Shown piece by piece: positions 8,205 to 60,869 of a stretch of DNA of 64,000 bases. The position numbers were made by a program, and so were the translations under genes. This stretch comes from Macrostomum lignano. Lineage: Eukaryota. The DNA is taken from NCBI GenBank assembly GCA_002269645.1, contig NIVC01002543.1, positions 1-64,000 of the forward strand, given 5' to 3'. Within the stretch, counting starts at the first letter, position 1. Each line of letters starts with the position of its first letter. Under the pieces are notes generated by a model. It was not told the DNA's origin, did not search any database, and saw nothing but the letters and a program-made list of their open reading frames with translations.

Positions 8205-8236
<32 letters not shown>

Positions 8237-8284
8237 CTCAGTTGCCAAGGAAACACTGAAAGCTGCTCTTCCTCATCAGCTGTC

Positions 8285-30119: not shown

Positions 30120-31880
30120 TTATGACGAAAATATTTTATTTATTTTATTCACATGTTTCGCTGTAACTTTCAGCATCGTCAGGTGACAATATTTGTAATA
30201 ATTTGAAGGTAATAAAATGAAAGTACGGGCCAAGAGTTAAAAAACAAGGTTTAAGTAGCCGTAGAATAGTCAAAAAAATTCTAAGAATAGTACTAGCCCC
30301 CTTCCTGTCAGTTGTACATTCAGGGTAGGCTTTAACTGTTTGATGTACAGGGCTTCCAACACATTTGGTTTGTGGTGGTGTTGAATCCGATCAATAATTT
30401 TAAACTTTTGATCATGTTTGATGTCGGCACACGCGTTGCACATTAGCAGATGGTCATGAATCGCGCTAGCCTTCTTCGGGTGTTCCTCGATCCTAGTGTA
30501 CAGGTGTCGATCAGTCTGACCGATGTACGACTGGCTCTGCTCAGCAGGGCAAACAAATTGATAGACGACACCAGCACACCGGGTGGAGGGTACTTTGCTT
30601 TTTAGGCTTGTCACAAAATTGGCCACCTTTTGAGTAGTGAAGATAACATCAATGCGTGTATCGAGACAGTCACGGCAGATATCAGTCAGCCTTTTTTTAA
30701 ACTTAGTACTTGACATTCCGATGTACGGAATACTGATGGTTGGTTTTCTTTCGGTAGAGGTAGAGTAAGTAACATTCTGGGGTCGTACTATAAAGCTGTC
30801 GTAGCGTAAGTTCGATCGTATTCGAATGCGTCGGAACTTTTACACTGCAGAGATGGGTGCTAAGAATGATCTTATCTTACGATGGCTTTATAGAACGGGC
30901 CCTCTGTTCTTTGGTAACTTTCTTATTGATGAAGGCATTAATCTCTGAGTTGATCAAGTAGTTTGGGTACTGTTTTTTTGTCAGGATCTTTTTGATCTTA
31001 GTTAATTCCTGGTGTAGGTTAAACCAGTTGCTGCAAATGTTGTAGGCACGATGCAACATGCCTCGAATCAAACTCAGCTTCCAGCTTTTCGGGCACAGCG
31101 CCTGGAAATTTAGCAGCACTCCAGTAAACGTAGGTTTTCTGTGGACGGTTGTCTCCCAACGATTTGCATTACGGGTCACCATAGTATCGAGGAAACTCAA
31201 ACAGTCATTTCCCGTTTCCGCAGTGAACTTGATGTTCTTATGAGTGTTGTTGAGCATCTTAAGAAAATTGTCACTCGAATTTCGGTCAAAAATCGCAAAA
31301 GTATCGTCAACGTAACGGTAGTACACCGTTGGTTCTGATCTTCATGGGAAGTGTTGGATTGCGAAGGCCAAAGCGTAGTGCGTGTTTCTCAACGATGGTC
31401 CTAGCTTCCGTTTAGATAAATTTGTCACAGCGATCGGAGCATTGTTATGAGCCAAAAGATTGTTTAGCTTCTTTTCATGTCTCTTCTTTATTGCATCGGA
31501 GTTACTTTGCACCGCATGATAGATCAAGTGTTTGACGGTAGTGAATTTGATGAAACTAATAGTTTCTTTCAATACACTTTCAATTGAAGACACTTGAAGA
31601 CGGGTTTTGTGGAGCCGCTGGTCATTGATTCGGATTTGCTTCTTAGTTAAAAACTGGTTCACCTCCGTTGGGTCATTGAATAGAGGTATTCTTGGTAGTT
31701 AGTAACTAAGTAACTCCGATGCAATAAAGAAGAGACATGAAAAGAAGCTAAACAATATTTTGGCTCATAACAATGCTCCGATCGCTGGGACAAACTTATC
31801 TAACCGGAAGCTAACCATCGTTGAGAAACACGCACTACGCTTTGGCCTTCGCAATCCAGCACTTCCCATAAAGAACTGAA
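30120..31880 (-). mobile_element. Penelope-like retroelement, internally deleted and rearranged
   Basis: GIY-YIG endonuclease ORF 30270-30716 (VVYQFVC..YIGQTDRHLYTRIEEH..EALYIKQLKPTLN); RT C-terminal part 30877-31338 (YVDDTF..FLD..HRKPT); N-terminal PLE segment 31342-31662; RT motifs before YVDD are missing; inverted duplicate at ~31710-31875. Confidence 0.9.
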
Positions 31881-32957
31881 CCAACAGGATCCAAACTGAA
31901 GTGGAATGGATGGTAAGCAAATGTTATTCTGAGAAGCATTTAGATGAAAATGTTCAACTTGAGCCCAGAACTAAGCATAGGATTATTGCGGCTACCGAAA
32001 ACTTTTTGACCTGGCCTGCAAATATGTTTACAGCAATGCCAATTCTGAGAAGCCACCGATGGTGCAGCTGTTTGCGAAAACCTTCAACACACACAATCAA
32101 AAAAGATAAAACGGCCCGATTGGGGGCCACCACACGCAAAATTACTCAGACGAGATAGGAAAAAGAAGAATTATTGTCATTTTTGATGCATAAATCTGAC
32201 AAGTTCTTTCAGACTGCTCAATGTCGGAGTAGTTCTATTAGAAGTAACAAATTATGAGTTTGCTTGTAGATTCTCAATGAGGTGCAGAGTTTGATATTCG
32301 TCCAAGTTGAATTTTGAGTTGCATAAATAGAAAATCATTGGCCCGCACAGACGCTCCCATGTTCTGCGAGCCTCATCAAGCAACAGGCCTCACCCAAGGC
32401 ACCCCAGCCAGCAGAACCATATGCGATGACTTCATCATTTACGAGAGAGTCTGACCCCGAGCCGCTTTATAGATTCTGTGGACTCGATATGGCAGCAATT
32501 TCTGATAATGATCTACACAAAAATAATAAAGTAACGAATATTCATATAGCAACCATCACAGTGAGCTATTTAAAAGCATATATTATGAACTTACTAATCG
32601 CGCAGCACACTCAAATCTCATCTCGAAATTTTAGAAACTTCATTCATGCGATGCATTTAGAAATCACACTCTGTAGCTCTATATAGTACTCATAGTAGCT
32701 ATTTACCCTAATTTGTTGGTCTTTTTGTTAGTCTTTTAAAACCTTACATAAATTGCACTTGTGTTCCACCAATGAAAATGAGATTAGCGGTATCAAGACG
32801 TTAATCTGAACCGAATACGTGCAGTTTTACCCGGGAGAGAAATTTCGCAACCGAGCCAGCAGTTTTCACTCCAAAGCACTGCTGCTGCTACTGCTGCTGC
32901 TGCTGCTGTTTCAGTTGCCAAGGAAACACTGAAGGCTGCTCTTCTTCATCAGCTGTC

Positions 32958-35900
32958 ATGGCGCAGCTCTTGGCGCTGTGCGCTCTGTGTGCAGCTCTTT
33001 GTGCTCTTGGAGGCGGTGAGTTGTCTGTCTACCCTCATTATCAGATATATTGTAAGCCTTTATCACTCATGTGAAGCCCCTGCTCTCTTACAGCGGCGAG
33101 CTTCAACAACTTCAACATCACGACAGAAAACGTCGCGGCTTCCTGGCAGTCGTCGGAATACAACAACAGGTGCTTCAGAGACACGGCTGTTCTTGAGCAG
33201 TGGGATTACTTTCACACAACGGACACCCCAGACTCTCATGGATGCCAGTGGCTGCTCATTAAGCTGCCCCGTGCAATCCGTGTGCAATCAGTCACTGTCT
33301 ATGGCAGGGCAGCAGGTGAGTTGTCTTGTCCACTTCTGTCTCTTCCGCTTCACTTCTTTCTTACTTCTCTTCTCACTGCAGAGCCCAGCAGAGCAGAGAA
33401 CATCGAGATTCTGCTGAGTGACAGACTGCCATCGGGTCTGAATGCGAGCAGCGATAGTTGCTATGGCACTCTGTCCGGTAGCTTGAGCTCGCTCACTCAG
33501 TGCGGAGTCACCCAGCGTGAGCAGACTCAGACTCACAAGGTGGCCTGCAGCTACTCTGGCTGCCCGAATGTGGGTTTATCTCCATTTACTCTGTTGTTTC
33601 TGAGTGCAAATAGGTGCAAATAGGTGCCATTAGGAGGTACAAATAGGTGCGATTAGGAGGTGCAAATAGGTGCAATTAGGAGGTGCAAATAGGTGCAATT
33701 AGGTGCCAATAGGTGCAAATAGGCGCAAATAGGTGCAAATAGGCGCAAATAGGTGCAAACAGGTGCAAATAGGTACAAATAGGTGCAAATAGGTGCGATT
33801 AGGAGGTGCGAATAGGTACAAATAGGTGAGATTAGAAGGTGCAAATAGGTGCGATTCGGAGGTGCAAATAGGTGCAAACTGGTGCAAATTGGTTCAAATA
33901 GTTGCAAATAGGTGCAAAAAGGTGCAAATAGGTGCAAATAGGTGCAAAAAGGTGCAAATAGGTGCAAATTGGTGCAAATAGGTGCAAATAGGTGCAAATA
34001 GCTGCAAATAGCTGCAAATGGCTAAATCACACGAAATTTCAGGTGACTGAGTACATCTTGCTAAGGAAGAACGTTCGAAACGAATCTGATAAGTACATGA
34101 ACTTTCAAGCTCTGGAAGTCGAAGAAGGTACGACTTGAGTTAACTAAGCTTAATTAAGTCATCATGGGACATTGTTGATTTGAAACAAACTTTCTCTCTT
34201 TCAGCATCTCAGAATGCGCAGATTTATAGGTGTGAAGTGTCTGGCAGACACCTCAGTAACTGCAGACTCAATGCTTTGCAAACTTTGAAAAATGGCGACA
34301 GAGTTTATATGAAAGTCTGCCCACCGTGTCAGCTTCCGACAACTGATGCAGCATCTTGTCACATTGCTGCTCCAAGTGGCAATATCACACAGCTGAGAGT
34401 TGTGAGCTCACGGATGAATTTATTTCTTTTTAAATGATTTTCACAGACTATTCGACTAACTAGTAGGAATAAGTGGAATGAGCAATTATGAATGTTAACA
34501 CTTTATTTTTTATACGATTGTAGCCAGTTTCTTAAAGTTCTTTCACCATTTTCAGAATGGGCACCCAGACTCCAATTTAATTGTAATTTTCACATCGACT
34601 GCGGAAAGTCAAGGAGGAAACTTCACGTGCAGCTTTGATTGCTTGAGCGAGTTGCCTCAGTCAGCAACTGAACCAATCGGTTTCTTTGGTATGCAGCTTT
34701 TGTGTGTACTTTTTACCTTAGACAGGTGAATTCGTAAAGCAACCTTCTACTGTTCAAACTGTTGTAATCTAGGATATTGGTATTTTGCTAGCAGCCTACT
34801 ATCAGGTGCAGTACAACTGACACCCTAAAAGCAGGTGCAGTACAAATGACACCCTAGCAGCAGGTGCAGTGCAAATGACACCCTAGCAGCAGGTGCAGTG
34901 CAAATGACACCCTAGCAGCAGGTGCAGTACAAATGACAGCCTAGCAGCAGGTGCAGTACAAATGGCACCCTAGCAGCAGGTGCAGTGCAAATGACACCCT
35001 TAGCAGCAGGTGCAGTACAAATGGTACCCTAGCAGCAGGTGCAGTACAAATGACAGCCTAGCAGCAGGTGCAGTACAAATGACACCCTAGCAGCAGGTGC
35101 AGTACAAATGGCTGCCTAGCAGCAGGTGCAGTACAAATGGCACCCTAGCAGCAGGTGCAGTACAAATGACAGCCTAGCAGCAGGTGCAGTACAAATGGCA
35201 GCCTAGCAGCAGGTGCAGTACAAATGATACCCTAGCAGCAGGTGCAGTGCAAATGAAACCCTAGCAGCAGGTGCAGTACAAATGACAGCCTAGCAGCAGG
35301 TGCAGTACAAATGGCACCCTAGCAGCAGGTGCAGTGCAAATGACACCCTTAGCAGCAGGTGCAGTACAAATGGTACCCTAGCAGCAGGTGCAGTACAAAT
35401 GACAGCCTAGCAGCAGGTGCAGTACAAATGACACCCTAGCAGCAGGTGCAGTACAAATGGCTGCCTAGCAGCAGGTGCAGTACAAATGGCACCCTAGCAG
35501 CAGGTGCAGTACAAATGACAGCCTAGCAGCAGGTGCAGTACAAATGACAGCCTAGCAGCAGGTGCAGTACAAATGACACCCTAGCAGCAGGTGCAGTACA
35601 AATGACAGCCTAGCAGCAGGTGCAGTACAAATGGCAGCCTAGCAGCAGGTGCAGTACAAATGATACCCTAGCAGCAGGTGGGTCATTCCACGAGAGGCTC
35701 CCATCATGTTTTTTGAACTTTGAGCACTTGTAACTTTCGAGCCATAATAGATAAACAAAGCTGCAAACAGCAATCTGTGTCAAACTTCTAGTTCTATCTT
35801 TTTCACATAGCTCCTTATGAATTCTAAAACAACTGAACACATAGCAGAGCGTCAACCGTCAGCATAGTTTATGCTCTGCTATGTGTTCAGTTGTTTTCCA

Positions 35901-38900
35901 GGTGCAGTGCAAACGGCTGAGCTCATTTTCTGTTGCAGAGGAGAAGCCCAGAAGTGTCAGCATTGAGCCCAGCAACAGGGTCCAGATTGGATCAAGAATT
36001 TTTCTGGCTTCAGGCATGGAGTTCCACTTCAGCTTCATCACAGAAGCTGCGTACCCAAGTCCCATCCATGCTTGTAGGCTGGTGAGAACTGCTGAGCAGG
36101 AAACTACAGAAGATACTTCAGGTGTTCTACTGCATCCCTTTACAGAGGTGAGAACATCCTGTGCAATCTTAATACTTTCATTTCCCATTCTGATATTCTC
36201 TCATCAAATGCTTTTTCAGAGATCCCTCACTGGCGCCTCAGCCAACAAAAGCCATGTAATTACCAAGATCTCACAGTACAGACTCAGCATTAGCGCACAC
36301 ATGCAAGCAGCTGGGCAAAAGATACAGTGCGTGTCGGCTGTCGGTGAAAGCAGTGAAAAAACGGTGAAATCAATTTCGCTGCCTGAGCTTGTAGGTAAGC
36401 AAAAATATTGGAGGGCGAATACTGGAAGGTGATACCTGGAATTTCTCATATTAGATGAAGATAAGTTGTATTGAAATGATAAAAACTGCAGTTCCAAGCA
36501 AGCCGGAGTTTCTGCTACCGCCAATCACGGATTGGAAAGACGGCCACCCCGTCTTAGTTGCTGTCGACTCAACAACAGACAGCCCTGTTCCAACCAGCCA
36601 CCGCTGCTTGCTGGAGACTCGAGACGGCAACAGAAGTCTCAACGCTACTCAAGTGAGTCTTGCTTTGGTTTCATGCCGTCGTAATGTCGGTTTAAATTAA
36701 TAATTAATAATTTTAATCTAACATAAAAATATTTCCTTCATGCGCCTGAAAAAAGCATTTAGCGTTCTGAGCATGAGTAGGCTTTGTTTCTGATTGAAAT
36801 TTTAAAACTATTCTGAAGCTCAGAATGGACACCGTGCTCATAAAAAATATGAAATTTTTCATAAAAAATATGAAATTGCTACAAATTTCGGTTCGTTCTC
36901 TTCCATACATGTCCATACACAGGGCTTACGTATTCTCGCATGGTAGAGACTTCTCAAATCGAAATTCCAGGTAACAAATAAAAGCTGTAAATTTGAGTTG
37001 GATGTTGATAGGCACTGGGGAAACGCAGCCTCTCTGGTCTGTTTGGTAAATCAATCTGGGCTGATCCAGACATGGACTCGAGATCGGCTACCGAAGGTGC
37101 TCTGTGAGTCTCTGATGCCATGACTTTCTTCACAAGCCTATTACTGCATTTGAAGATTAAGTCACAATTGCATTTTCGAATTCAGACAAGGCCGAAGGGC
37201 TGGCCATCCGTATTTTGTCAGGAGACCTGGTGAGTGATGAAGAAGCCAGCTTCTCAGTGACTGCATCTGACTCAGGATACCCAGCGGCTCTGCACCAGTG
37301 CAGAATCGAGAGCAAGAGCCTCGGAGAAGACAAGGTATGAGGCTGATGTTATTGCTCATTCAGAGTTCCCAACCAGCAGTTCAATGCTACAATTTCGGTT
37401 GACCATTCCGCAGACTGCAGAATCAGACGGCTCAAGTCACTGGAGATTCACGCCTCAGCGAGGGCACAACGGTGAAAGAATCAGATGCGATGTGGTGCAG
37501 AAACTGAGTGGCTCTCTGATATTCAGTCAGACTGTCAACAGCTCTAATCTGGAGGTTAAATGTGAGGCTCATGCTTTATTATGCTGCATGCTGTGATCCC
37601 GATCGATACAGTAGGGCTGCTTGCACTTCAGACAGGGCAATCGTCACGTGGCCCAGCAATATCGCACCGAAAAAGGAAGGAGAGGCTCTGTCATTTGTTG
37701 TGCTCGCAGACGGAAACCCAGAGCCCAGCAGTCAGTGCTGGCTGCAGCTGGTTTCTGGCTCACAGGTGAGTCTTTGATTTGGGTGTGATGCTGGTTTCTG
37801 GCTCACAGGTGAGTCTTTGATTTGGGATGATGCTGGTTTCTGGCTCACAGGTGAGTCTTTGATTTGGGAGTGATGCTGGTTTCTGGCTCACAGGTGAGTC
37901 TTTGATTTGGGAGTGATGCTGGTTTCTGGCTCACAGGTGAGTCTTTGATTTGGGAGTGATGCTGGTTTCTGGCTCACAGGTGAGTCTTTGATTTGGGATG
38001 ATGCTGGTTTCTGGCTCACAGGTGAGTCTTTGATTTGGGATGATGCTGGTTTCTGGCTCACAGGTGAGTCTTTGATTTGGGAGTGATGCTGGTTTCTGGC
38101 TCACAGGTGAGTCTTTGATTTGGGAGTGATGCTGGTTTCTGACGCACAGGTGAGTCTTTGATTTAGGATGATGCTGGTCTCTGGCTCACAGGTGAGTCTT
38201 TGATTTGGGATGATGCTGGTTTCTGGCTCACAGGTGAGTCTTTGATTTGGGATGATGCTGGTTTCTGGCTCACAGGTGAGTCTTTGATTTGGGATGATGC
38301 TGGTTTCTGGCTCACAGGTGAGTCTTTGATTTAGGAATATTTTGCAGTCTCGGTGTTTCATAATAATCACTATTCTCGTTCCAGGTACACCTGCATAAGC
38401 TGAAGCATTCCATTTTTGAGAGCACCTTCAACGTCACTGTTGATAGGTCAATGAACCGAGCCAATTTTAGCTGTGTTTTGACTCAACCTGGACTTCCATC
38501 TTTAACGGAGCAGAGCTTCACCCAATTGATCACAGTTTTTTGTAAGTTTACAGAATCCATTTTCATCGGTTTCCTAAAGACGTATAAAATTGTAAATGAG
38601 TGCGTATCATTTGAGCCAATGGAAACATTTCCTGTCGCTTCGGAGGCTCTGACTTGAAGCACTTCTTAAATCATAGACTGAAAAATAATATTGACCCAAC
38701 CATCTCACAGATCAGCCTCAGCCTCCACTCACCATCGACTTGGCTCAGACTGTCTACGAAGGCACCGACGTCACCTTCACGGTGCGGTCGGGCGCTGGAA
38801 ACCCCAGCGTCACCCACAGGTGCCACGTGTACAACGGAAAAATTGTGAGCGCAATATTTGCTCATCAAATCACCTGAATTGCAGCTTTGATTTAACACAG

Positions 38901-41900
38901 AGTTGATCATTTCAGGAAGTTCAAAACAGCATGAAAATCGAATCGGAGTACTTGACAATGGTGAACTATGCACCCAACAGTCACGACAAATTTGTGAGCT
39001 GCACGGCTGAGCAGATGCACCGCTCTGAAGTTGTGTTCACCAGCAGCATCAGAAGGAACATCACCGTCAATTGTGAGAAGTCAAATGCCATTTTATTAGT
39101 ATGCAGCCTGCCATTTACTTGAAAACCGGATATCCACTTTAACTTCAGACTTTGCGCACAACTCCATGGACATCAGTCCGACAGACGGAGTTCTTGCTGG
39201 AGATCGAGTCGAAGGGACACTCAGATCTTATGGTGGCCGGCCTGCCGTCACGCGGCATGAGTGTTCGCTTGGCGGCCCTGAGCTGACTATGGAAAACGTA
39301 TGCTTTTTTATCACCTGAGTGCTTTTGAATTGACTGTAAGCCTTCTTCAGGCATCCTAAATGATCAATTTGGGAATTTTTCTACAGGTAAGAAGCCGTCC
39401 CACCGAAGTGAAGTTCACGTTTCGTGCATCGAAAGAGCACGACGGCAAGGTGCTCGCCTGCAAATTCGTTCAGGATGAGCGACTGATTGAGTGGAAGAGA
39501 GACAAACTCAGCGTCTTCTGTAAGTACAGTTTGAGTTGTTTATTGGTGTGAAAGTATGCGGGTACATTCTACTTTGAAAAGGAACTCGTTAAGCCACACT
39601 GATGTAAATGTGCACTGCTTTTTCGCACCTGTAGACAAAGCGGATTTCGACTCTGAGGTGCAAACCTTAAATAGAAAAGTCAGATGGAACACGACAGTCC
39701 AGTTCAGCATCTACTACTCTGATGTGGGAAACCCGTCCGCCAAGCACTTCTGCCGCATCGGCTCTCGGCCACTCACCGATCCTGAGGTGCGAAAATACTG
39801 ACCCACATTTTTGTCTGCTTTATGTAAGGGACTGGGTAGTTGATATTGTAATGGGAAACATCTGGTCAAAATACATTTCAGTCAGTTTCAACATTACAAT
39901 CGCTTTGGAAGTTCAAGGCTCAAGTCGGAGACAACGGTCAGAAGATCGTCTGCCAGGTGGTGCAAAATGATCAGCATGGCGGCCGAGTCTTTAACCAAAC
40001 AGTTGCCAGCCAGACTCTGGATGTGCTCTGTAAAGATTTTGTTTATCAGTTGTATTTATTGCTTCAATCGAGCTATTTATATTTATTCCAATATATTGAA
40101 CCACTTTGACTGTCACAACATTGTTTTCTTGATCTCTCTATCTTTTCAGACCCAGTCAGCTACTCAGGATTTCTATCCCAGCCACCGTCGGTGACGGAGG
40201 GCGATCCCTTGGTTATAACTTTCTTATCAACATCAGGAAACCCCGAGCCTCGTCACCGATGCTGGTTGCAGACACCTGCAGGTCGGATGGACGCAGTCAA
40301 TCTAACAGAGGCGAGGACAGGTGTGGACCTCTCGACGAACTTCAGTGTGACTTCTGTAAAGCAGATGAATGGAGGATCTGTGGTTTGCTGCGTCCGTCAG
40401 AAGGGCCTTGAGGACCTGGACAATGAGTTCTCCCAGAACATTACTGTTTTCTGTGAGTTCTCTGTCGCGACTGCTGCAACTTTTATATCAATACAAAATC
40501 TATTAAAAAACGTTCGTTTTTCCGTTCCAGTCCGATCGGAGGTGGATCTGACCGGCTCAAAGATTTCAGGATCCACAGTGCTCGTCAGCATCAATGTGAC
40601 GGACGGAAACCCGACACCGCTGGTGAACTGCTCGCTGCTCTCGAGCTCTGAAACTCGATATGTGGGTTCTCACTGTGCACAGTTGCTCCACTTCTATTTG
40701 CATTGAGTAGCTTTAATGCAGCAGAACCGGTCATTTTAGGAGGTGTCCAGGAAGGACTCGACAATGCTGAAAGTCGGACTCAATGAGATAGAAGTCGATC
40801 TGCTTTCAAGAGACCAGCGTCAGTCAGCCAACGTCACCTGTTCTGTGAAGCAAGACTATGCGGGTTTCAGTAACAGCAGCCTTGTCTTCTTGGCGCTCAA
40901 ATCTGACGAGAGTTTTCAAGCTAGCGACCAAGAAAGTGAGCCGATCTCAGCTGCTCGTATTGTTTTTTTCAACTAGCATGACTTTTTCTGATATTAAAAT
41001 GTTTAAGTGCATTATTTCACCGATTTCTCGTATTAAATAGTGCGTTGTCTCACACCGCCAAAAGCAGGAGGGTCGGTAGGCGGCGCTGTCGGCGCCACAT
41101 TCGGAACGCTGTTGGCCGTGGGACTGGTCGGGGCCGCAATCCTGCTGCTGCTGAGAGCTCGGCGACTCAGGGCAACTGAAGGGCCCGACAATCGCAGCGG
41201 CTACTCCAACGGTAGAAGAGGAGCCAGTGGAGCTGCTCGAACGGAACGAGAAAAGCAACAGCCTAGAAAAAAGCAGACCGAAGATCCCACAGAGACTGAG
41301 CTGCAGTTCATGGACAAGCACTATCTGTATCCGGTGAGATGAGCATCATTGGACTTTTAATTAACAGATTCCTGATCCAACTTGGAACAATTTGTGTCTT
41401 TGAGCAAGACACTTAACTCTGCATTGCTTCAGTTCACCCAGCTGTAAAATGGGTGCCAGCATTAGCTGGGGTAATTGAGGGTGTATGGCGACCCAGAGTT
41501 CTTGGGCTGAACAGCCGTACGCAGCCTTCAGATGCGCCGCGCAATAGCTCGGCGCAATAGGTTGCACGTCTGGCCCCCTGGGTTAGGTGTAATAAATTAT
41601 TATTATTATTATACATCTGAAGCATCTCCCTAGCAATATCTGCAGCCTCTCTTTAGCAACATCTGCAGCATCTCCCCAGCAACATCTGCAGCCTCTCTCT
41701 AGCAACATCTGCAGCATCTCCCTAGAAGCATCTGCAGCATCTGCAGCATCTTCTCAGCAACATCTGCAGCATCTCCCTAGCAATATCTGCAGCCTCTCTC
41801 TAGCAACATCTGCAGCATCTGCCTAGAAGCATCTGCAGCATCTGCAGCATCTTCTCAGAAACATCTGCAGCCTCTCCCTAGCAACATCTGCAGCATCTCC

Positions 41901-42262
41901 CTAGCAGCATCTCCAGCATCTCCCTAGCAAAATGTGCAGCATTTCCGTAGCAACATCTGTAGCATCTCCTTAGCAACATCTGCAGCATCTCCCTAGCAAC
42001 ATCTGTAGCATCTCCCTAGCGAAATCTGCAACGTACCTATTAGCTGTAACCAATACCTACAGTATTCTAAAATTTGATTCCATTGCAGAAGCCCCGCATG
42101 GAGTACGCTACGGTTGTCAAGGGCAAACTAATGGAAGAGACCAGCCTAGCCGACAGCACAGAGACAATCTACCTGACCATCGTGGGCTGCACACAGCCTG
42201 AGGATGACAAGGCGCCCACAATGCAGAAATCTAAGGTCAACTTAGAGAAAATTGAAAAGTGA
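32958..42262 (+). CDS. Lectin-like/10xIg membrane receptor copy C with a distinct TM and ITIM-like/ITSM tail
   Basis: Ectodomain exons closely match A/B up to the donor at ~40936. TM exon 41041-41333 (GAVGATFGTLLAVGLVGAAILLLL-RARR, phase 1 to 0) and exon 42089-42262 (KPRMEYATVV..ETIYLTIV..) splice in frame. Confidence 0.85.
33605..34020. repeat. 10-bp intronic tandem repeat (AGGTGCAAAT)n, copy C
   Basis: About 40 degenerate units. Confidence 0.95.
34803..35680. repeat. 29-bp intronic minisatellite, copy C
   Basis: About 30 units. Confidence 0.95.
37748..38340 (+). repeat. 42/43-bp splice-donor minisatellite, copy C
   Basis: About 14 units. Confidence 0.95.
41385..41612 (+). mobile_element. 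SINE (same family as 4272-4545), 5'-truncated, in the tail intron of copy C
   Basis: TTGAGCAAGACACTTAACTC..CTGTAAAATGGG CORE-like segment, shared body GCAGCCTTCAGATGCGCCGCGCAATAGCT, (ATT)n tail. Confidence 0.75.
41630..42030. repeat. ~23-bp intronic tandem repeat
   Basis: Degenerate (AGCAACATCTGCAGCATCTCCCT)n. Confidence 0.9.
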
Positions 42263-42829
42263 CTGTTTTACGTTTCAGTTTTTTAATTATGAATATTACA
42301 AGGGTTAGACTGTAGAGGTATGTCTAATTCTTGGCAACAATACAATTTACTGTTTGACAAGTCGCTAAACAAATTCTGCTTGTACTTTTGCTTAGACTTT
42401 AAAGCGTTACAATAATAGCCCCGTTATGAAGCTTTATACCTGTCTCGTATCCAAGACGTGCATCAGCAAAATTCTGCATGAATAAATTAACTCTGCGAGA
42501 ATGCAGTAAATATAGATGTAGGAGGGTACATTATATACTAATTCAGAATGTACTAAATGTACTATATATAAGTCTAGCTTATTTATTTAGCTTATGTAGT
42601 TTCCATGTACATGAAAGTTTTGACTCTGAAGTAAGTTTGTGAAATAGCAATTTCAATTTACTTTAGCATCTACGAGTATTTTATTCCTGTAAATTTTGTT
42701 CCTCGTTATCAACTGTACAATATGTAATTTCCCTGTGTGCTTATTAATTCGTATAATATAGTTTTAAGATTTTCTTATACAGAAAAAATCCCCTCAAATT
42801 TGGAAGTTTAATAACCGGCGGTGTTTCAG

Positions 42830-43012
42830 AAGACCTAAATTTCAGAAGATCTGAATTTCATAAGACCTAAATTTCATAAGACCTAAATTTTATAAGACCT
42901 AAATTTCATAAGACCTAAATTTTAGAAGACCTAATTTCATTAGACCTAAATCTCGAAAGACCTAAATTTCGAAAGACTTAAATTTCAAGACCTAAATTTC
43001 ATTAGGCCTAAA
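42830..43012. repeat. 16-bp tandem repeat
   Basis: (AAGACCTAAATTTCAT)n, about 11 units. Confidence 0.85.
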
Positions 43013-44129
43013 GTTCACATCGTGAAAAGTGGAGGCTGATAACTTGGTGACAAGAAATTTAGGTTTTCTGAAAATTTGGCGTTCTGATGTGGCGTTTGAC
43101 GAATTTTATTTTTAACGATGTGAAATGTTGGGGTCCTATGAATTTATGAAAGTATCTAAAAAACGGCTACTACTCGTAAAATACCCGCTACAGTTAAATA
43201 AATCGCCCACACTGTGAAGTTGAACGCAGATTTGTTTTACTGCGAGATTGGTTGCCACCGATAGACAAGCCCTCGCTTCGGTTTCCGCTGGTATCCGTTG
43301 ATTCAATAATTCAAAACGAGAATTTAGCTGCCGGCACAAATATTTGAGACACTGCATGGTTTGCCTCGACCAAAAATGCACCGAGTATATTGTGAGCGAT
43401 GCATATCAGCAGCCATGCAATTCAACTAAGAACTGTACAGTGTACATTGGAAAATGCTGCAATTGCAGAGAGACTGACTGCGTTTTGGTATATACAATTG
43501 ATAAGCATCAATTCAGTTGAACATAGTAACCATAGAAATCAGGATGGGCCGAAAGCCCACGCAGCTATACTGTAGGTTGCAGCATACTGTTTGAAATTTG
43601 GCAAAATTTAAACATTTACAAGCAACTATAACGTACATGAAAGTTGAAGCTTAAATTATCATTGATGTCAGCGCGCGAATGCAAAGATGCAGCGAAAAAT
43701 CTGTGAAAGCATACACAAATATATTTTTGGGGGATGACCCTCTAGAAGTTACGGCTATCAACAAGTATAGTTTATCTTATCTTCAGGGCTTACACAGCAG
43801 GTATTTGTTTAATTGGGAGGTTGCAAGTTTAAATTTGTGTTTTCTTAAATGGATTTTTGTCTTTTTTTGCGTTCGTCGGTGAACTCATGAAAAGCCACCT
43901 TGCACCAAACACGATTGCTCTGGCTTCATGCAAGAAGGCGTCCTTTAATAAGTGTGGGCCAAAAACGAAAGGTTCCCTATCTCACTAATGCATTTTAATG
44001 CGACATTGAGCCCTCAAAATGAGCTGTCAAAAAAGAACGTCAGCGTTACGTTCTGATAAAATTGGGCAATTTCCAGTGGTTCTTGGGCCAAAAATTCGAA
44101 CTAAAGACCGAACTAACATATCAGCAAGC

Positions 44130-46534
44130 CTATAGTGAAGCATTTCCTGAGCAGCGACTCAAAAGCCGCTTGCTGCTTGGCCTCTTCGGCCGGGTCGTTC
44201 GCAGGCTTGATTGCCTCGGCCGCCGCTGACTGCGGACCACCGACACCCGGCGGCGGCGTAGACGGCCGCGGCCCGTTGACGCCGACGCTGCCGGGGACGC
44301 GCGACAGCGCCTCGGCGACAGGAGAGCGGCGGTGAAGAAAGCCGGAGGCAGCAGGCTCTCCATCAGAGTCTGGACACCCCGAGCATCGCCAGCGACTGTC
44401 AATATTTGAGAGCGAGCGTTGATTGAGCTTGAATCATTTTTTTAATATTTTTGGAATGATTTTTTGTGTCTTAGAAAAGTATTAAGTATGGTTACTATCG
44501 ATTTTTAAGAATTTTATTACAGGGACTACTCAAAAATGGTTTGAGCACTATTTTTACCAGGTAGTCTCTGGGGTTTGAAACGCATTTAAGCTTAAAGGAG
44601 CTTAAACGCTTTGAAATAAAAGATTTCTTTACATCCATATACTAAAAATGGTCTATCGGTAGGTAGGTAGGTATCTATCTAGGTATTTGATCGATTTTAG
44701 CAAAATTTTAACTATTTTCAAAACGTTTCAAATGATTTAGTAGGTGTATCGAACATTTGAAGATTGTTGTATCGAATATTTAGAAAGTTTTTTATTAATT
44801 TTATAAACTTGCAAAATTAGATCACGAAAAATTAAATTTAGGTTAGTTTTTCATTAAATTTACATACAAATTTTCAGTTGTTGTCCATATTTGAGCCTCA
44901 ATCTATAATTATAAACAGCAAGCAGACCATTGTTTTAATTTAATATAGAATTTTGCAGCCCATTTGGGCTTACGCGCATGTAATTTAATCCAAGATACGT
45001 TTGCCAATGTAACGGAGCTTTTGTCTATGGTAGCAAGGCTGGCACAGCGCCTTTTAATTTGGTCCAACAAGCATCAATTCGGTCCAAACGCTCGTGAGCC
45101 ATTCGGGAAACTATTGCCTTTTCGCAACCGTCTTTAACTTTAAAGTTTACCATCATAGCAAATAGTACTGGCGTTTTTTACACGGTAACTAAAATAAATA
45201 CTGGTTTTATATACTGTAGTATTTATAGCAATGGTCCAGCTACATTTGAAGGACCACAAATCCATTCTTTTGAAGGCGAATGAGTCGCATTCTCGTTCGT
45301 TTCTTTTGAAGCACCCTTCGTACTTTGCATTGTTAAAAGTACGAGCTAATAACAAACGCTAAGCTATAATTGCACATAAATTACGCCTAAACTCCATCTA
45401 CCGACTTTAGTTAGTTTAAATTTAAATTCATTATGAAAATAAGAGATACAGGGACAAATATTGAGTAGTCCCTGATAAGGTAACTATTTACAAGGTATTT
45501 ATTTCAGTTACCGTGTAAATAACGACTGCCAGTAGCTTTAGCTACCTTCCGGTTTTACCATAAATTAGTCCTATTAATTCACACTGTTGCTGACTGAGAC
45601 ATTTACCTATCTGCCAAGCTGTGATTAAATTAGTCACATGTTTATGACCGGCATAAATTGCTGTTAAATTTAGGATGCATCTGTAACTATCTAAAGCTGT
45701 GCAGTCATTTACAGTCTAAATGTACACTAAAAATAATATACATTTTCTGCTTACATGGAAACATTCGCGTCAGCAACTCCTGATGCAGCTGGTCAATGTA
45801 CGCAGCCGCCTGTTGCACTACTTTCACCTGTAAGGTGGTAGAGAGAGAGGGAGAGAGAAGTTTAGCGTGAAAGAAAATTATGTAGCCATCTTTACTATAC
45901 TACTATCAATAGACAGTTTAGAGATTATTAATTGCATTACTTGTATATAATTATAAAGGATAGTAACTTCTTAGCAGTCCACTGAGTCCCATTCGGGTGT
46001 CTAAAGTGGGTACTGAAGTAGTTGCTCGCGGCCCCATGAGGTATCTGGGTATCTAGAGTTGGGTAGTTGCTCGCGGCCCTATGAGGTATCTGGGTATCTA
46101 GAGTTGGGTAGTTGCTCGCGGCCCTATGAGGTACCTTGGTATCTAGAGTTGGGTAGTTGCTCGCGGCCCCATGAGGTATCTGGGTATCTAGAGTTGGTCG
46201 TGGGAATATACTGACGGCCCATTGAAGTATCTGGGCATCTAAATCTTATGGCGCTAGGTGAAGCATTAACACACAAAGGTAATTATTTTGGCCCAGGTAA
46301 GCTGGTAGGAAAACGGTTGTTAGCAACATAGGTAATCTTGTAGAATCCAGCTAAATAGCTTGAATATAACGGTACACGTCTTCCACAGCCCAGTGGAACT
46401 CTCACCTGTCCTGTCTCCGATGCCAGCGGCCCGTCAGCTGAGACTTCGGCGGCACCAGGCAGCACCCGGAGCAGCCGACGGCACTCGCGCACCTCCTCCA
46501 GTTGGCGAGACCGAAGCTGCAGCTGTTGCGTCAT
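44130..46534 (-). CDS. Id/emc-like helix-loop-helix protein, 155 aa, 3 exons (46534-46406, 45827-45755, 44395-44130)
   Basis: GT-AG splicing with consistent phases (0, then 1) gives MTQQLQLRSRQLEEVRECRRLLRVLP-loop-QVKVVQQAAAYIDQLHQELLTRMFP-FAGDARGVQTLMESLLPP...; helix 2 resembles Id/emc (QHVIDYI..LQ); basic region reduced. Confidence 0.8.
46019..46197. repeat. 45-bp tandem repeat in HLH intron 1
   Basis: About 4 units of GTAGTTGCTCGCGGCCCCATGAGGTATCTGGGTATCTAGAGTTGG. Confidence 0.9.
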
Positions 46535-46616
46535 GACTTGTTGAACTGGATGATGCTGGGCCTGAGTCTGAGTCTCTGCGAGTTTCCTTTGCTTTCTGAG
46601 TCTCAGTCACTGCTTG

Positions 46617-46624
46617 TATTTATA
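46617..46624 (-). promoter_or_regulatory. Candidate TATA box of the HLH gene
   Basis: TATAAATA on the minus strand, about 83 nt upstream of the ATG at 46534. Confidence 0.5.
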
Positions 46625-46797
46625 GCTATACTCAAGCGGGGCTCACGTTCAATTGGTTGCTGCGGGTTTCTGTGCGCCCGACAGCTGGGGGGGGGGGGGG
46701 CTTGAGTCCGAATTTTCGCTCGCTTCTAGGCTGGGGTGGAGAGGGGAGCCGTCACCTGCCGGGCCCCGGGGACCCCCACCTCCACGTTCCTCGGTTC

Positions 46798-48553
46798 CAA
46801 GGACTTCTCTATATAGCATCTGGACTGGAAGCTCCCCACCCGCATATACCTTAGAGGGGCAAAAGCCCTTCCCAAAATAGCTTAGATCCTAGTTACATCG
46901 TATATTAGATAGCTGGCCATTATGCACTTATTGTTATATAAATCATGAGCCTAATAAAAATTCATTCAGAATGATTTAGATTTCTTTTTTTAATAATTTC
47001 GATTATTAAAAATTTCGATTTTCGATTCGATTTCGATAAATTTCGATAACTTCGATGCTCTCAACTGAAGGTAGCTTTCGATGTCTAGACCATTCTTTGA
47101 ACCAACTTTGGCTGAAGCAGACCGAAGGGTTCGATCAGATGGAAAACAGAGGACGTCCTGCTCCAGTATTGTCTTATAAGCCGAAGCGCTGGTGGAGTAC
47201 AGAACATAAGCGAAGATCATGAGCTGCTGTGAATATCTCCTTCTGCAGCTCGGCTGCCTGCTGAGTTTCAGCTGCTCCAAAATGAAGCCAACAGTGCGAT
47301 TCTCAACAAGATTCTCCGCTTCTTCCAGAAGATCTTGGGCCATGTCAAGCATACGGTTGGCCTTGCCTTCAGCTTTGGCACTGTCAGTGTCTACCTCCCA
47401 GTTCTTGACTTTGGACATTATGTTGACTAGTTGACTGAGAGTCGATACTTTCCCGTCCGAAAGTAAGTCTCTGAGTCGGGTTGGCTTTAGCAACACTCCA
47501 TTGACTCCAATAGTGATGCTGTGGTCCTTAGCCATGTAGATGTAGCATGAGACATGAAAGGAAGGCTCCATGTTCAGCGCGTAGATGCAGCTGGTCAGCA
47601 AGCATGATGGTAAGAAATCCTACCGGTTTTTCTTCCTCTCGATTCAGTTTTAGCTGCACTTCATCAAGGTAGTCGTCAACGATTGAGTCCGCATCTCGGA
47701 ACTCATCAATTTGGCCTTGCAGTGCAGTATTTTCTCTCTCCAAGCGCTGAGTTGATGTTGCCGCAGTTGACCTCGGTTCCGCCTTGGCAGAAGAGAGATA
47801 AGAAGAGAGATAAGTCTATTCGGGAAGATAGACGGCACCGCCCCTGGCTTCAGACACCGCCTCGACAGTTGGTCCCGGCCCTTCTTGCGGTTCGCGTTGG
47901 TGTCCAGAGAGTTTTCCACGAAGTCTTGGGGTGGAAGTGCGCAGAGCAAATGGTTGAGCTCTTGGTAGGCTCGAAGTTCTGCCTTGGATTTGCTCGCTTC
48001 CATTGTTCAAGAAGGATTGCATTGTGCATAGGATAGCCATGAGAGCTCCTTGTCCGAGGAGGCTCAATTAGTGCAGCCCTGTGCTGAGCACGACTTAACC
48101 ATTTTGTTGGAACACAATTGTCAGTGCTTGAAGCAACTGCAGCAGTATTGTGAAATTGATGAGGCAGGCACTGAAGGCAAAATTTTCTTTTCCATTATTG
48201 TACAGTACAGCCAGCTCGTCAGTATATATAGAACGTGGGAGTGGGACTCCCACTCATCACCTCCACTCATGACTCAGTCCGAATAGCAGACTAGTTTTCA
48301 AGATAAACGTACATGTTAAAGATTCATTGTTGGGGGATAAAATTTACCCCATGAGCTCTTCCCTGCATGCCCCTGAACTTTGCTTCTTTTCTGTGTACAG
48401 TGTCTTTGTCATGTTTATGGCCAGCTTGACAGTTAAATTTTTCCTGTCTCCTTTCCTCCTTCTGGGTCTTTTCTTCTTTTGCCCCTGTGAGGTATAGAGA
48501 CGGAAAAAAAATTGCCAAGCTTCCAGTCCAGATGCTATATAGAGAAGTCCCTG
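46798..48553 (-). mobile_element. P-element-superfamily transposon, internally deleted
   Basis: 36-bp TIRs CA(A/G)GGACTTCTCTATATAGCATCTGGACTGGAAGCT; exact 8-bp TSD CTCGGTTC (46790-46797 and 48554-48561); internal THAP/transposase remnant. Confidence 0.9.
46990..48102 (-). pseudogene. THAP-domain P-element transposase remnant (N-terminal part only)
   Basis: MVKSCSAQGCTN*..HGYP..EQWKRANPRQNFEPTKSSTICSAHF..DF..LKPGAVPSIFP (THAP, with a stop and frameshifts); ORF 46990-47601 RRYSQQLMIFAYVLYSTSASAYK..FPSDRTL..YLQLRASKL; catalytic domain absent. Confidence 0.85.
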
Positions 48554-52470: not shown

Positions 52471-53259
52471 TTGTGATACCATGAATACCAACTTGTCAGT
52501 GCCTTAATAAAGGTTTTGACAGGAGGGAATTGTATAAATGCCCGAAGTATCTTACTACTGATTTAACTTTAGTAGTATTGAAGGGATGTTTTTAAGCTTT
52601 TCGACGATATTTCTTTGCACTGTATATTCCTTAATTAATAATTCATAACTGGCAAGGGGCTGTCATGCAGACAGTGTTATGACGTAGGTGTCCAGATGGT
52701 CCAAATCGAATTTGTCAGATTAGAACGAACCTATTTTTTAATTACTGTTTAAAAAAGCAGAGATGGAAAGCGGCTGTGTAATATTAATGAGAGTAGGATA
52801 GAGGGGGACTGGGGGGGTACGAACTGTGAGGCCTCAATATGAGAGGCAAGTGAGGGGGATATGGGAGAAGTTCACCGCAGCCCGTGAGGACAGGAGTTTA
52901 ACAAGCACTCAGGCGGTCGCCCGGGCTTCCACCTCCCCTTTCACTTTCTGGGTTAACGGGGAGGGGGAAGTCAGGGGTGAGTCATTAGGACGGGCGAATG
53001 GAGAGGTCGGAGAGCAAGTCTCCACGCGATGCGTGTTCGCGTGGCTTAGATAGAATAAAGCAAATCGGATTATCTCTGCTGAGCTCCTTTGCCAATGGAT
53101 TTTGCATCCACCCCTAATTCTATTCCTGTCTGCAAAATGAATCAAAGGAAACCAAAATAAGCCTCTCGTCTCCTTCTGGCTAATGCTTTGTGCTTGTCAG
53201 GAGTTCGGACGCTCTATTTAATCTGAGTAGCTCTTTGGCTTACTTTTGACTGACATAAA

Positions 53260-53468
<209 letters not shown>

Positions 53469-54282
53469 TACCGCTGTCTGTGTGTTTAGCGGGACCAGAG
53501 TTTTGTTAATGCATTAGGTGGACCACCTAGTTTCCTTATAAAACCGGTGTCTTTTGTCTCTACACGAAAAGTTAGCGTGGGTTGTCTTTCAGTTTAGCCT
53601 GCAGATTAGCCATCTCGTGGAAACTGCATGTCACTTTCAACTGGGATAGCTGGACCAGCCCGGACCTGTTTTAGGTGGACCTTCAAAAAGACACCGTTTA
53701 GGTGGACCATCATTTATTTAGCAGAGTACTGGGATTATTATCGACCCAGTACTGTTAAGCACGAGAAACAACACTAAAAGTCACGTGACAGAAGTCCCAA
53801 ATACACAATATGTAATAAAGTGAAAATAATGCATTCAGTTCTACTTTGCGCCGGACTCAAGAACCATCATCCCCATTGAAAACAAATGAATCAAATGCAA
53901 CTAATTTTTAGACCGAGAAAAATAGTTACAAGTGCAAATTAACGGCCAAGCAAAAGTTTAAATAGCAAAAAGTCATATTTGTTTTTCACTAGAATAATGA
54001 TAAACCTAAAGAAACACACTTAACGTCCCAAATATGTGCCAAAAGGCAAGTAGATTGACGACGATATAATTAATAAATACATTTGCCTAATAAATTTCAC
54101 GTATTACAATAGAACAACTTTCCACTCAATTTTTGAAAAATTAAATAAAGTTTTAACGGACGGACAAGACATGTTACGACGGATAGCGGAATCATCTCAC
54201 AGAAAGCCACAAGCTGTCGCAGTCAATATCATCATAAACAAACTTTTGCGGTTAAGCACAAAAAATCGTCTTCATTTTGCCG

Positions 54283-57200
54283 GAGTTGCTTGCGTCACTC
54301 GTCTGCATCAAAGCTGACTTGCCGTCTCCAGACTGGGCCTGTCAAATTTGGCATTTATACGAGAATTCAGGATTGACAGTTTACAACTGATATTCTACTG
54401 AGACTGAAACAGACTGGCATATTGGTGTCAGTACAGTCTGTAGGTTAGCTGGACCTTCAACAGACTTAGCTCTTCAACAGACTGGCTCTGTGGCGTCAGT
54501 ACAGTCTGTAGGTTAGCTGGACCAGTTCAATTAGAATAGGATAAGCCAAATCTGAACACTTTTGCAGCAAGCTCACCACAGTAGATTCAATCTCGTCCTT
54601 TGACTAAACTGCGATGAGGCAACACGTCTGTCCACCGGACTGACCAGCGTCTCAGGTGCCTCAGCCGACTTCTTAGAAGTGTCCAGACGTGAGGTGTCAG
54701 CCTATAGTCGACTTAATGGCTCTTGGCCTTTAAAGTCTTGGTCGATATCTTGCTGGAGTTGCTTGCGTCACTCGTCTGCATCAAAGCTGACTTGCCGTCT
54801 CCAGACTGGGCCTGTCAAATTTGGCATTTATATGAGAATTCAGGATTGACAGTTTACAACTGATATTCTACTGAGACTTTGAAACAGACTGGCATATTGG
54901 TGTCAGTGCAGTCTGTAGGTTAGCTGGACCACCTAAACTTGAATTCCACCTCCCATCTGTGAGGCTCTTCAACAGACTGGCTCAGTTGCGTCAGTGCAGT
55001 CTGTAGGTTAGCTGGACCTCCTAAACTTGAATTCCACCTCTTATCTGTGAGGCTCTTAAACAGACTGGCTCTGTGGCGTCAGTACAGTCTGTAGGTTAGC
55101 TGGACCTCCTAAACTTGAATTCCACCCCATCTGTGAGGCTCTAAAACAGACTGGCTCTGTGGCGTCAGTACAGTCTGTAGGTTAGCTGGACCAGTTCAAT
55201 TAGAATAAGATAAGCCAAATCTGAACACTTTTGCAGCAAGCTCACCACAGTAGATTCAATCTCGTCCGATGACTGAACTGCGATGAGGCAACACGTCTGT
55301 CCACCGGACTGACCAGCGTCTCAGGTGCCTCAGCCGACTTCTTAGAAGTGTCCAGACGTGAGGTGTCAGCCTATAGTCGACTTAATGGCTCTTGGCCTTT
55401 AAAGTCTTGGTCGATATCTTGCTGGAGTTGCTTGCGTCACTCGTCTGCATCAAAGCTGACTTGCCGTCTCCAGACTGGGCCTGTCAAATTTGGCATTTAT
55501 ATGAGAATTCAGGATTGACAGTTTACAACTGATATTCTACTGAGACTTTGAAACAGACTGGCATATTGGTGTCAGTGCAGTCTGTAGGTTAGCTGGACCA
55601 CCTAAACTTGAATTCCACCTCCCATCTGTGAGGCTCTTCAACAGACTGGCTCAGTTGCGTCAGTGCAGTCTGTAGGTTAGCTGGACCACCTAAACTTGAA
55701 TTCCACCTCCTATCTGTGAGGCTCTTAAACAGACTGGCTCTGTGGCGTCAGTACAGTCTGTAGGTTAGCTGGACCTCCTAAACTTGAATTCCACCCCATC
55801 TGTGAGGCTCTTTAACAGACTGGCTCAGTTGCGTCAGTGCAGTCTGTAGGTTAGCTGGACCACCTAAACTTGAATTCCACCTCCCATCTGTGAGGCTCTT
55901 AAACAGACTGGCTCTGTGGCGTCAGTACAGTCTGTAGGTTAGCTGGACCAGTTCAATTAGAATAGGATAAGCCAAATCTGAACACTTTTGCAGCAAGCTC
56001 ACCACAGTAGATTCAATCTCGTCCGATGACTGAACTGCGATGAGGCAACACGTCTGTCCACCGGACTAACCAGCGTCTCAGGTGCCTCAGCCGACTTCTT
56101 AGAAGTGTCCAGACGTGAGGTGTCAGCCTATAGTCGACTTAATGGCTCTTGGCCTTTAAAGTCTTGGTCGATATCTTGCTGGAGTTGCTTGCGTCACTCG
56201 TCTGCATCAAAGCTGACTTGCCGTCTCCAGACTGGGCCTGTCAAATTTGGCATTTATATGAGAATTCAGGATTGACAGTTTACAACTGATATTCTACTGA
56301 GACTTTGAAACAGACTGGCATATTGGTGTCAGTGCAGTCTGTAGGTTAGCTGGACCACCTAAACTTGAATTCCACCTCCCATCTGTGAGGCTCTTCAACA
56401 GACTGGCTCAGTTGCGTCAGTGCAGTCTGTAGGTTAGCTGGACCACCTAAACTTGAATTCCACCTCCTATCTGTGAGGCTCTTAAACAGACTGGCTCTGT
56501 GGCGTCAGTACAGTCTGTAGGTTAGCTGGACCTCCTAAACTTGAATTCCACCCCATCTGTGAGGCTCTAAAACAGACTGGCTCTGTGGCGTCAGTACAGT
56601 CTGTAGGTTAGCTGGACCAGTTCAATTAGAATAAGATAAGCCAAATCTGAACACTTTTGCAGCAAGCTCACCACAGTAGATTCAATCTCGTCCTATGACT
56701 GAACTGCGATGAGGCAACACGTCTGTCCACCGGACTGACCAGCGTCTCAGGTGCCTCAGCCGACTTCTTAGAAGTGTCCAGACGTGAGGTGTCAGCCTAT
56801 AGTCGACTTAATGGCTCTTGGCCTTTAAAGTCTTGGTCGATATCTTGCTGGAGTTGCTTGCGTCACTCGTCTGCATCAAAGCTGACTTGCCGTCTCCAGA
56901 CTGGGCCTGTCAAATTTGGCATTTATATGAGAATTCAGGATTGACAGTTTACAACTGATATTCTACTGAGACTTTGAAACAGACTGGCATATTGGTGTCA
57001 GTACAGTCTGTAGGTTAGCTGGACCACCTAAACTTGAATTCCACCCCATCTGTGAGGCTCTAAAACAGACTGGCTCTGTGGCGTCAGTACAGTCTGTAGG
57101 TTAGCTGGACCAGTTCAATTAGAATAAGATAAGCCAAATCTGAACACTTTTGCAGCAAGCTCACCACAGTAGATTCAATCTCGTCCTATGACTGAACTGC

Positions 57201-59125: not shown

Positions 59126-59156
59126 TTAAGTTGTATGTGCACCGATTTGCTTACCT

Positions 59157-59560
59157 GGTAGATTTTGCTTTTTGGTCTGGCAGGAAAACATATTTCTGAA
59201 ATTTCGATTGAGTAGGTTCTTATTGAGGCTCTTTACTAAAGTTAATCATTTTTTCATCCTAAATAACACTTCGTTTTGGTACTTACTGCAATTTCAATGC
59301 AATTTTTCAAAAACGTCGTCGAAAACATTTTTCACTGGCTCCCAAGTATTGTTAGATCTAAAAGTCGTGTGTTGTTTTATTAGCTACGTAATAATCCAAA
59401 GGCTTGGTTTCACTAGAGAATTAGAACGCGAGGAAGTCAATCTTTTAAATTGAATCTTTTCATTTTATGCTTACCTTAGGTATCCAGTCCACTTGATGTA
59501 ACATATGTTACTGTTGCACCTCTCCGGGACTCTGTGTTATTGGGATATCTCCTGCGAGAC
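59157..59560 (-). pseudogene. Decayed spliced chromodomain gene fragment
   Basis: Exon ending at 59475 (..YIKWTGYLR) splices across a GT-AG intron 59474-59358 to SNNTWEPVKNV, matching the chromodomain consensus Y.IKW.GY...NTWEP..N; neighbouring stops and frameshifts. Confidence 0.75.
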
Positions 59561-60669: not shown

Positions 60670-60864
<195 letters not shown>

Positions 60865-60869
60865 TACCG

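Follow-up and report, generated by a model that had tools for sequence, protein, structure and literature searches.

Whether a surface receptor of a flatworm carries an inhibitory cytoplasmic tail of the kind familiar from immune receptors, and whether that tail is its own, is the question raised by one of three tandem immunoglobulin superfamily (IgSF) genes in Macrostomum lignano. The third copy, here termed C, appears to end in an exon encoding two tyrosine-based motifs in a tail distinct from that of its neighbors, A and B. Paired receptors and signalling through ITIM/ITSM motifs are familiar chiefly from vertebrate immunity, with recent descriptions in tunicates and cnidarians; in the literature searched, no account of such receptors emerged for Macrostomum or any other flatworm. 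M. lignano has transgenesis and RNAi, and a tail-swapped cluster in so tractable a flatworm would, if truly present, provide a simple system for how paired receptors arise and a test of whether signalling by a balance of tyrosine motifs is a general animal solution. Should the tail of C be unexpressed or unphosphorylated, the locus amounts to no more than a gene copy that is young and rearranged. The window considered is the whole 64,000-nucleotide stretch analysed, and all coordinates refer to it.

Three tandem receptor genes

Self-comparison of the window reveals three tandem plus-strand copies, A (~8160-15490), B (~18333-27139) and C (~32194-40941), which are 88-95% identical with introns included and 89.6-91.1% identical in their ectodomains. 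Between B and C the exons are 94.9% identical and the short introns 89.6%, with a dN/dS of 0.53 and a dS of ~0.08; the greater identity of exons than of introns, together with these two values, points to young copies under purifying selection. Codons 1-100 (32958-33260 in C), which cover the signal peptide and the tip of the N-terminal domain, have a B versus C dN/dS of ~1.2 on small counts (16 non-synonymous and 4 synonymous changes), as against 0.24-0.5 across most of the ectodomain, an excess that possibly reflects diversifying selection at a ligand-binding tip.

The coding model of C (32958-42262, plus strand) has 25 exons and 1363 amino acids; its introns are all GT-AG, its junctions phase-compatible and its reading frame free of internal stops. 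The encoded protein has type I membrane topology and an Ig-like ectodomain. Behind the signal peptide lie two N-terminal domains and nine C2-like Ig repeats (~eleven domains in total), then a stalk, a hydrophobic helix of 26 residues with RARRLR directly after it, and finally a tail of 117 residues. The Ig repeats are divergent and most are divided between two exons; Pfam C2-set_2 gives 37 bits against a cut-off of 21, a pass reached only as a summed, whole-protein score. A draft translation of the upstream exons had five UniProt matches only, all M. lignano proteins named 'Ig-like domain-containing protein' at 70-87% identity, and the nearest UniProt relative of the final model is P0001, at 91.6%. 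As judged from its sequence, the family is one of large type I IgSF surface receptors specific to M. lignano, with C an intact gene.

The N-terminal domain of C may be a very divergent V-set domain. Residues ~94-157 (window ~33382-33569) have a patterned resemblance, PSG...SGS.SG..ASLT...C.Y.G, to antibody light-chain V domains in the PDB, for which the E value of 0.22 is non-significant. An F-type lectin or discoidin-like identity for this domain was considered and is unsupported, Pfam being empty there, and AlphaFold2 on the N-terminal 280 amino acids with a three-sequence alignment yielded a mean pLDDT of 40.6, which is unusable.

The other two copies share a different tail. Copy B is an intact 1310-residue model (19074-27040, plus strand) whose tail exons are at 26580-26722, 26830-26901 and 26978-27040. 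Copy A is modelled at 1028 residues (8285-15391, plus strand), with tail exons at 14937-15100, 15181-15252 and 15329-15391; its residues 1-666 are 100% identical to UniProt A0A1I8IZW3, one of the five matches above, which places the window in M. lignano and provides an independent annotation with which the present calls for exons 1-13 agree. A deletion in A (window 13471-13966, corresponding to C 38580-39697) takes out exons 15-18 together with the 5′ half of exon 19; the reading frame survives only through an exon 14 to exon 21 splice, at the cost of three Ig repeats. The usual donor of its transmembrane (TM) exon is mutated from GT to CT and a downstream donor, AAT/gtaata, must serve. In A and B a TM exon of their own and two short exons encode MVGVAIVLSISLPATVYVWRR...DVPLVP / TVYYYEENPALPDRPPSVEETDxN / MxxCSEEEQTAQxAxEFYVQ (slashes marking exon junctions). 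Their tail, of 72-79 amino acids, is common to A, B and UniProt P0004 and P0006-P0008, with the same splice from exon 23 and the same tyrosines. The tails of A and B are 89% identical; that of C is unrelated to them (28% identity in a forced alignment).

At the start of the window (1-2700, plus strand) lies a fourth, divergent member of the Ig family, ~30% identical to A, B and C and cut by the window edge. It has its own TM exon at ~2440-2625 (GLLGLGLGLLAAAFAIGLAIGTY) and a short tail apparently without tyrosines, which indicates that tails differ widely inside the family. UniProt models of the family leave out the plainly coding exons 16-20. Three independent ones, P0001-P0003, all end by read-through of the exon 15 donor (...VYNGKI/VSAIFAHQIT and a stop; window 38845-38874), their shared end reflecting either a recurrent error of annotation or a genuine isoform that is truncated and secreted.

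The transmembrane and tail exons of copy C

Exon 23 of C (40740-40935, plus strand) encodes the second half of the last Ig domain and the stalk (...LALKSDESFQASDQE), has a phase 1 donor, and is conserved in both other copies (A, 14563-14758; B, 26235-26430). Homology with these copies at the nucleotide level breaks off at 40941, 6 nt beyond the donor of this exon, and intron 23 of C (40936-41067, plus strand) is unrelated to intron 23 of A and B. The TM exon that follows (41068-41333, plus strand; phase 1 in, phase 0 out) occurs, like the motif exon after it, just once in the window. It encodes the TM helix (41076-41153, VGGAVGATFGTLLAVGLVGAAILLLL) and the stop-transfer signal RARRLR (41154-41171), then GYSNG (41199-41213), and ends ...DKHYLYP, with HYLYP at 41319-41333. 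Intron 24 (41334-42088, plus strand, 755 nt) is devoid of coding signal and leads to the last coding exon (42089-42262, plus strand), which runs from KPRMEYATVV through TIYLTI to EKIEK; its translation is KPRMEYATVVKGKLMEETSLADSTETIYLTIVGCTQPEDDKAPTMQKSKVNLEKIEK, closed by a TGA at 42260-42262. The phases fit throughout, exon 23 leaving in phase 1, the TM exon passing from 1 to 0 and the last exon entering in 0. As the original prediction had it, the motif exon is in frame with a preceding exon ending in HYLYP: the junction at 41333/42089 is of phase 0 and the frame runs continuously across it (...HYLYP/KPRMEYATV...). A polyadenylation-type AATAAA (42481-42486, plus strand), 219 nt past the stop, is the sole one in 42263-43000. 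No other coding 3′ exon with signal specific to one frame emerged from a scan of 42263-47000; every frame of a GC-rich island at 44117-44423 scores, and this island is probably of minus-strand origin.

The coding character of both exons is supported by codon usage, scored as log-odds trained on the exons of B and exons 1-23 of C versus their introns. The last exon reaches +0.56 bit per codon in the proposed frame and -0.24 and -0.15 in the two others; the TM exon has +0.64 in frame. For reference, exons of A score 0.05-0.95, and intron windows, taken in their best frame, average -0.33 with a maximum of 0.14. The intron and the 3′ flank on either side of the last exon do not exceed 0.05.

Splice sites were scored with position weight matrices from 66 family introns. 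The donor at 41333 (CCG/gtgaga) has 8.7 bits and is the top candidate of its region, and the acceptor at 42089 (ccattgcag/AAG) has 12.2 bits, which is at the 73rd percentile and the best value in 41340-42400. The motif exon at 42089-42262 thus looks both coding and well spliced. The acceptor of the TM exon (aaaagcag/GAG) is of a different standing: a weak NAGNAG (41065/41068), it scores -2.0 bits, lower than every one of the 66 in the family (2.9-16.1). In-frame alternative acceptors at 41041 and 41065 score no better than that at 41068. A T-rich acceptor at 40977 looks better but leads straight to a stop, and read-through past exon 23 would meet a stop at 40974. Given the weakness of the acceptor at 41068 and the stops that the alternatives at 40977 and 40974 bring, a secreted C is a live alternative, and the attachment of the tail to the C ectodomain is a putative one. 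On balance, the TM and motif exons quite probably belong to a C transcript.

Intron 24 also holds a dispersed repeat of ~200 nt (41386-41575), 79% identical to 4290-4485 and inverted relative to it; the latter copy sits in an AT-rich region upstream of A, and the two are probably a small mobile element. A 23/46-nt minisatellite occupies 41613-42030 of the same intron.

As to where the tail came from, the swap itself is plain in the DNA and its source is not matched by any known protein in the libraries searched. For the TM segment and tail of C (147 amino acids) a word-indexed search of 5.8 billion clustered proteins yielded no homologue, and phmmer, run exhaustively against 1.84 billion representatives, gave 0 matches. 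By tblastn and blastn within the window, no remnant of the C tail was found near A or B, and none of the A/B tail near C. When conservation of the tyrosines was checked, the paralogues in the window and the UniProt relatives proved to carry the unrelated tail. The last Ig exon of P0007 is almost identical to that of C, yet the family tail is attached to it, so the tail of C is young or locus-specific. With one tail shared and the other found singly, the shared one is taken to be the usual tail of the family and that of C a unique replacement, probably recent. (Since the UniProt models also skip exons 16-20, absence from databases is weak evidence against coding by the C tail.) A recent rearrangement, its breakpoint just within intron 23, would have attached new TM and cytoplasmic exons to the C ectodomain.

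The tyrosine motifs and their possible function

The tail of C, 117 residues long and disordered, has five tyrosines. Two are in the last exon: Tyr1312 in MEYATV (42098-42115, plus strand) and Tyr1334 in TIYLTI (residues 1332-1337; 42164-42181, plus strand), 22 residues apart. That TIYLTI is an exact ITSM, as originally proposed, agrees with both its coordinates and the consensus TxYxx[V/I]. The companion claim, that MEYATV is ITIM-like and close to the TEYATI of PD-1, needs some recasting. The sequence is present and is near TEYATI, differing from it only at -2 and +3. However, TEYATI is the ITSM of PD-1, whose ITIM is VDYGEL (PMC10901852), and with the ITIM defined as [I/L/V/S]xYxx[I/V/L] (PMC9546547) a regular-expression scan for [ILVS]xYxx[ILV] found no canonical ITIM in the whole tail. 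Being a Yxx[V] with Met at -2, MEYATV could be termed ITIM-like, or ITSM-like with Thr replaced by Met, and the most fitting label for its sequence is that of an ITSM/ITIM-like site. The remaining tyrosines are in GYSNG (a YxN, Grb2-type site) and in HYLYP (a YxxP). YATV and YLTI both match, in addition, the YxxPhi sorting consensus, i.e. Yxx followed by a bulky hydrophobic residue.

In the six-frame translation of the window TxYxx[VI] has only 8 matches in 128,000 residues, 3 of them on the plus strand, and an ITSM turns up in 2.9% of 200,000 composition-preserving shuffles of the 117-residue tail. An ITSM accompanied, 15-35 residues off, by a second motif of the class [ILVSTM]xYxx[ILV] is present in 0.1% of the shuffled tails, a figure that is optimistic in that the second class was set post hoc, after the sequence had been seen. 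What is noteworthy is where the two motifs lie, 22 residues apart and in the cytosolic part of an Ig receptor, and not the motif by itself.

With this placement in mind, ligand-driven clustering of C might allow a Src-type kinase to phosphorylate Tyr1312 (MEYATV) and Tyr1334 (ETIYLTI), the latter preceded by Ile at -1, as Src favours, with an acidic residue at -3. Spaced 22 residues apart, the pair of phosphotyrosines could then engage the tandem SH2 domains of a SHP2/Corkscrew-type phosphatase, as in PD-1 and PECAM-1. The output of C would probably be damping, unlike that of A and B, whose tail presents a YxN (Grb2-type) site. We infer here that the tail is transcribed, spliced onto C and phosphorylated, that an SH2 partner of this type binds it and that the signal is inhibitory, and the full scheme of SHP2 docking and damping is offered tentatively, as a possible mechanism. 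SHP-2 N-SH2 library screens are reported to accept Met at -2 as a minor choice. SAP-type adaptors are, to our knowledge, a vertebrate family and so an unlikely partner in a flatworm. In PD-1 the phosphorylated ITIM binds the N-SH2 and the phosphorylated ITSM the C-SH2 domain of SHP2, which is thereby held open (PMC12905495). Shp2/Csw predates Bilateria (PMC7260276), which makes a flatworm SHP2/Csw partner plausible.

Several other explanations have to be set against SHP2 docking. Rather unlikely, though deserving of real weight, is that the motifs are fortuitous, the tail having come from a very recent rearrangement or an assembly join without honed signalling, and C pseudogenising or being mostly secreted. 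The orphan status of the tail in both protein libraries would fit, as would its uniqueness when the family tail is kept in six sequences and dS between copies is only ~0.08, the position of the breakpoint a mere 6 nt past the donor, the very weak TM-exon acceptor with its stop-giving alternatives, and the occurrence of a single ITSM in ~3% of shuffled tails. Against it, both tail exons are frame-specifically coding, with open frames that suit the required splice phases; the TM helix and stop-transfer signal are of textbook form; the splice sites of intron 24 are strong; a suitably spaced pair of motifs arises in just 0.1% of shuffles; and database absence loses force when the UniProt models omit coding exons 16-20 as well. 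Alternatively, the TM and tail exons could be genuine but part of another transcript, i.e. the remnant of another receptor or the product of a promoter or trans-splice site within C. The sequence past 40941 is foreign to the family and the acceptor at the junction of tail to C is weak, as such an origin would predict. It is nevertheless very improbable, for the open frame at 41037-41339 has neither an in-frame ATG nor a signal sequence upstream of the TM segment, there are no further upstream exons in 40941-41068, and the phase of the TM exon matches that of exon 23 exactly.

The main functional rival accepts the exons as used and takes the two Yxx[V/I] motifs to be unphosphorylated YxxPhi signals, read by AP-2 mu, so that the tail would govern how C is trafficked or endocytosed. 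Both YATV and YLTI agree with the consensus, and recognition of YxxPhi is universal in eukaryotes, whereas ITIM/ITSM signalling is undescribed for flatworms in the literature searched. AP-2, however, needs neither Thr at -2 nor a spacing of 22 residues, both of which are typical of tandem-SH2 ligands, and ETIY looks like a Src-type kinase substrate. Sorting as the whole explanation is unlikely, and the two roles are compatible: the YVKM of CTLA-4 serves both as a sorting signal and as a phosphatase-type motif.

Returning to SHP2 docking, the claim that C is the inhibitory member of the group fares unevenly. The motifs are well placed, in a tail found only in C and within an intact IgSF model, which is in its favor; A and B are without activating hallmarks. 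Their TM segments (MVGVAIVLSISLPATVYVW) were found to have no charged residue, and their tail has neither an ITAM nor a hemITAM, its tyrosine sites being confined to YYYEEN (a YxN) and EFYVQ. That C is inhibitory is, from its sequence, a reasonable hypothesis; without activating hallmarks in A and B, inhibitory/activating pairing is not established.

Parallels in other systems and further features of the window

Like C, PD-1 is a type I IgSF protein whose tail has two tyrosine motifs, at a distance of ~22-25 residues and with an ITSM as the membrane-distal one; its motifs dock both SH2 domains of SHP2 (PMC10901852, PMC12905495). It differs in having one IgV domain as against ~eleven domains, and in that a canonical ITIM, VDYGEL, comes first where C has a site with Met at -2. 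Membership of C in the PD-1/CD28 family finds no backing in the 0 phmmer matches or in the architecture, which is not that of a single IgV. Similar in build are PECAM-1/CD31, CD22 and other Siglecs, in which many C2-type Ig domains in a row precede one TM segment and a tail with paired Yxx[V/I/L] motifs. Their motif pairs, ~20-25 residues apart, recruit SHP-2 or SHP-1. There is no detectable homology, though, and the Ig domains of C are very divergent.

For the cluster as a whole the pertinent comparison is with KIR, LILR, SIRP and the paired Siglecs, which like A, B and C are young tandem genes with ~90% identical ectodomains and a swap of TM and cytoplasmic parts at the pre-TM intron. The M. 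lignano copies are tandem paralogues with near-identical ectodomains and different tails; an activating partner with a charged TM residue, ITAM or hemITAM is what A and B do not provide, their tail offering YYYEEN instead. Judged by its sequence, the locus has evolved much as a paired-receptor cluster does but falls outside the definition of one. An NK-like paired-receptor locus, in which the same ligand-binding ectodomain is joined to opposite tails (YxN in A and B, SHP2-docking in C) by exon shuffling at the pre-TM intron, with balanced activating and inhibitory recognition arising independently in flatworms, would be distinctly unlikely on present evidence. If it were nonetheless real, recognition of self and non-self, of pathogens or of mating partners could be served by it.

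The Botryllus FcoR/Fester and Hydractinia Alr genes are also pertinent, being lineage-specific, clustered IgSF genes whose tails, as with C, diverge far more than their ectodomains. The tail of Botryllus FcoR4 has an ITIM-type VIYMTI (PMC12582321), and Alr tails have ITIMs and ITAMs (PMC9546547). As with PD-1, PECAM-1 and the Siglecs, neither family is homologous to C. In FcoR and Alr, motifs are swapped between alleles and splice forms. For those genes there are expression and polymorphism data and a role in allorecognition, whereas C, from another phylum (Platyhelminthes), is known from sequence alone.

Repeats and mobile elements are abundant elsewhere in the window. Between B and C, at 30270-31662 on the minus strand, three consecutive ORFs are retroelement-like, with a YVDD box in ...YYRYVDDTFAIF; a GIY-YIG-like ORF (YIGQT...) there suggests a Penelope-like element, and Pfam gave no confirmation of a retroelement in this interval. 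Downstream of C, at 46990-48003 on the minus strand, is a P-element-transposase-like HTH (Pfam Tnp_P_element, 21.4 bits, just below the cut-off of 23) with a THAP-like ...AVPSIFP motif, probably the remnant of a P-element/THAP9-type transposon.

Intron 13 has a minisatellite with a 42-43-nt unit in all three copies, at differing copy number (12030-13390, 22840-23920 and 37650-38420), and that of intron 6, with a 29-nt unit, is hugely expanded in C (34730-35820). Such intronic minisatellites may promote unequal exchanges in the cluster. Further downstream there are arrays at 48.7-49.1 kb (39-nt unit), 49.9-50.7 kb (32 nt) and 51.0-52.5 kb (~50 nt). From 53200 to 64000 the sequence is extensively satellite, with higher-order units of 581/669 nt built on an 88-nt sub-repeat at 54.3-59.3 kb and at 61.7-64 kb. 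The flanks of this satellite are themselves duplicated, 53256-54456 being similar to 60651-61907, with an 8/12-nt microsatellite-like repeat.
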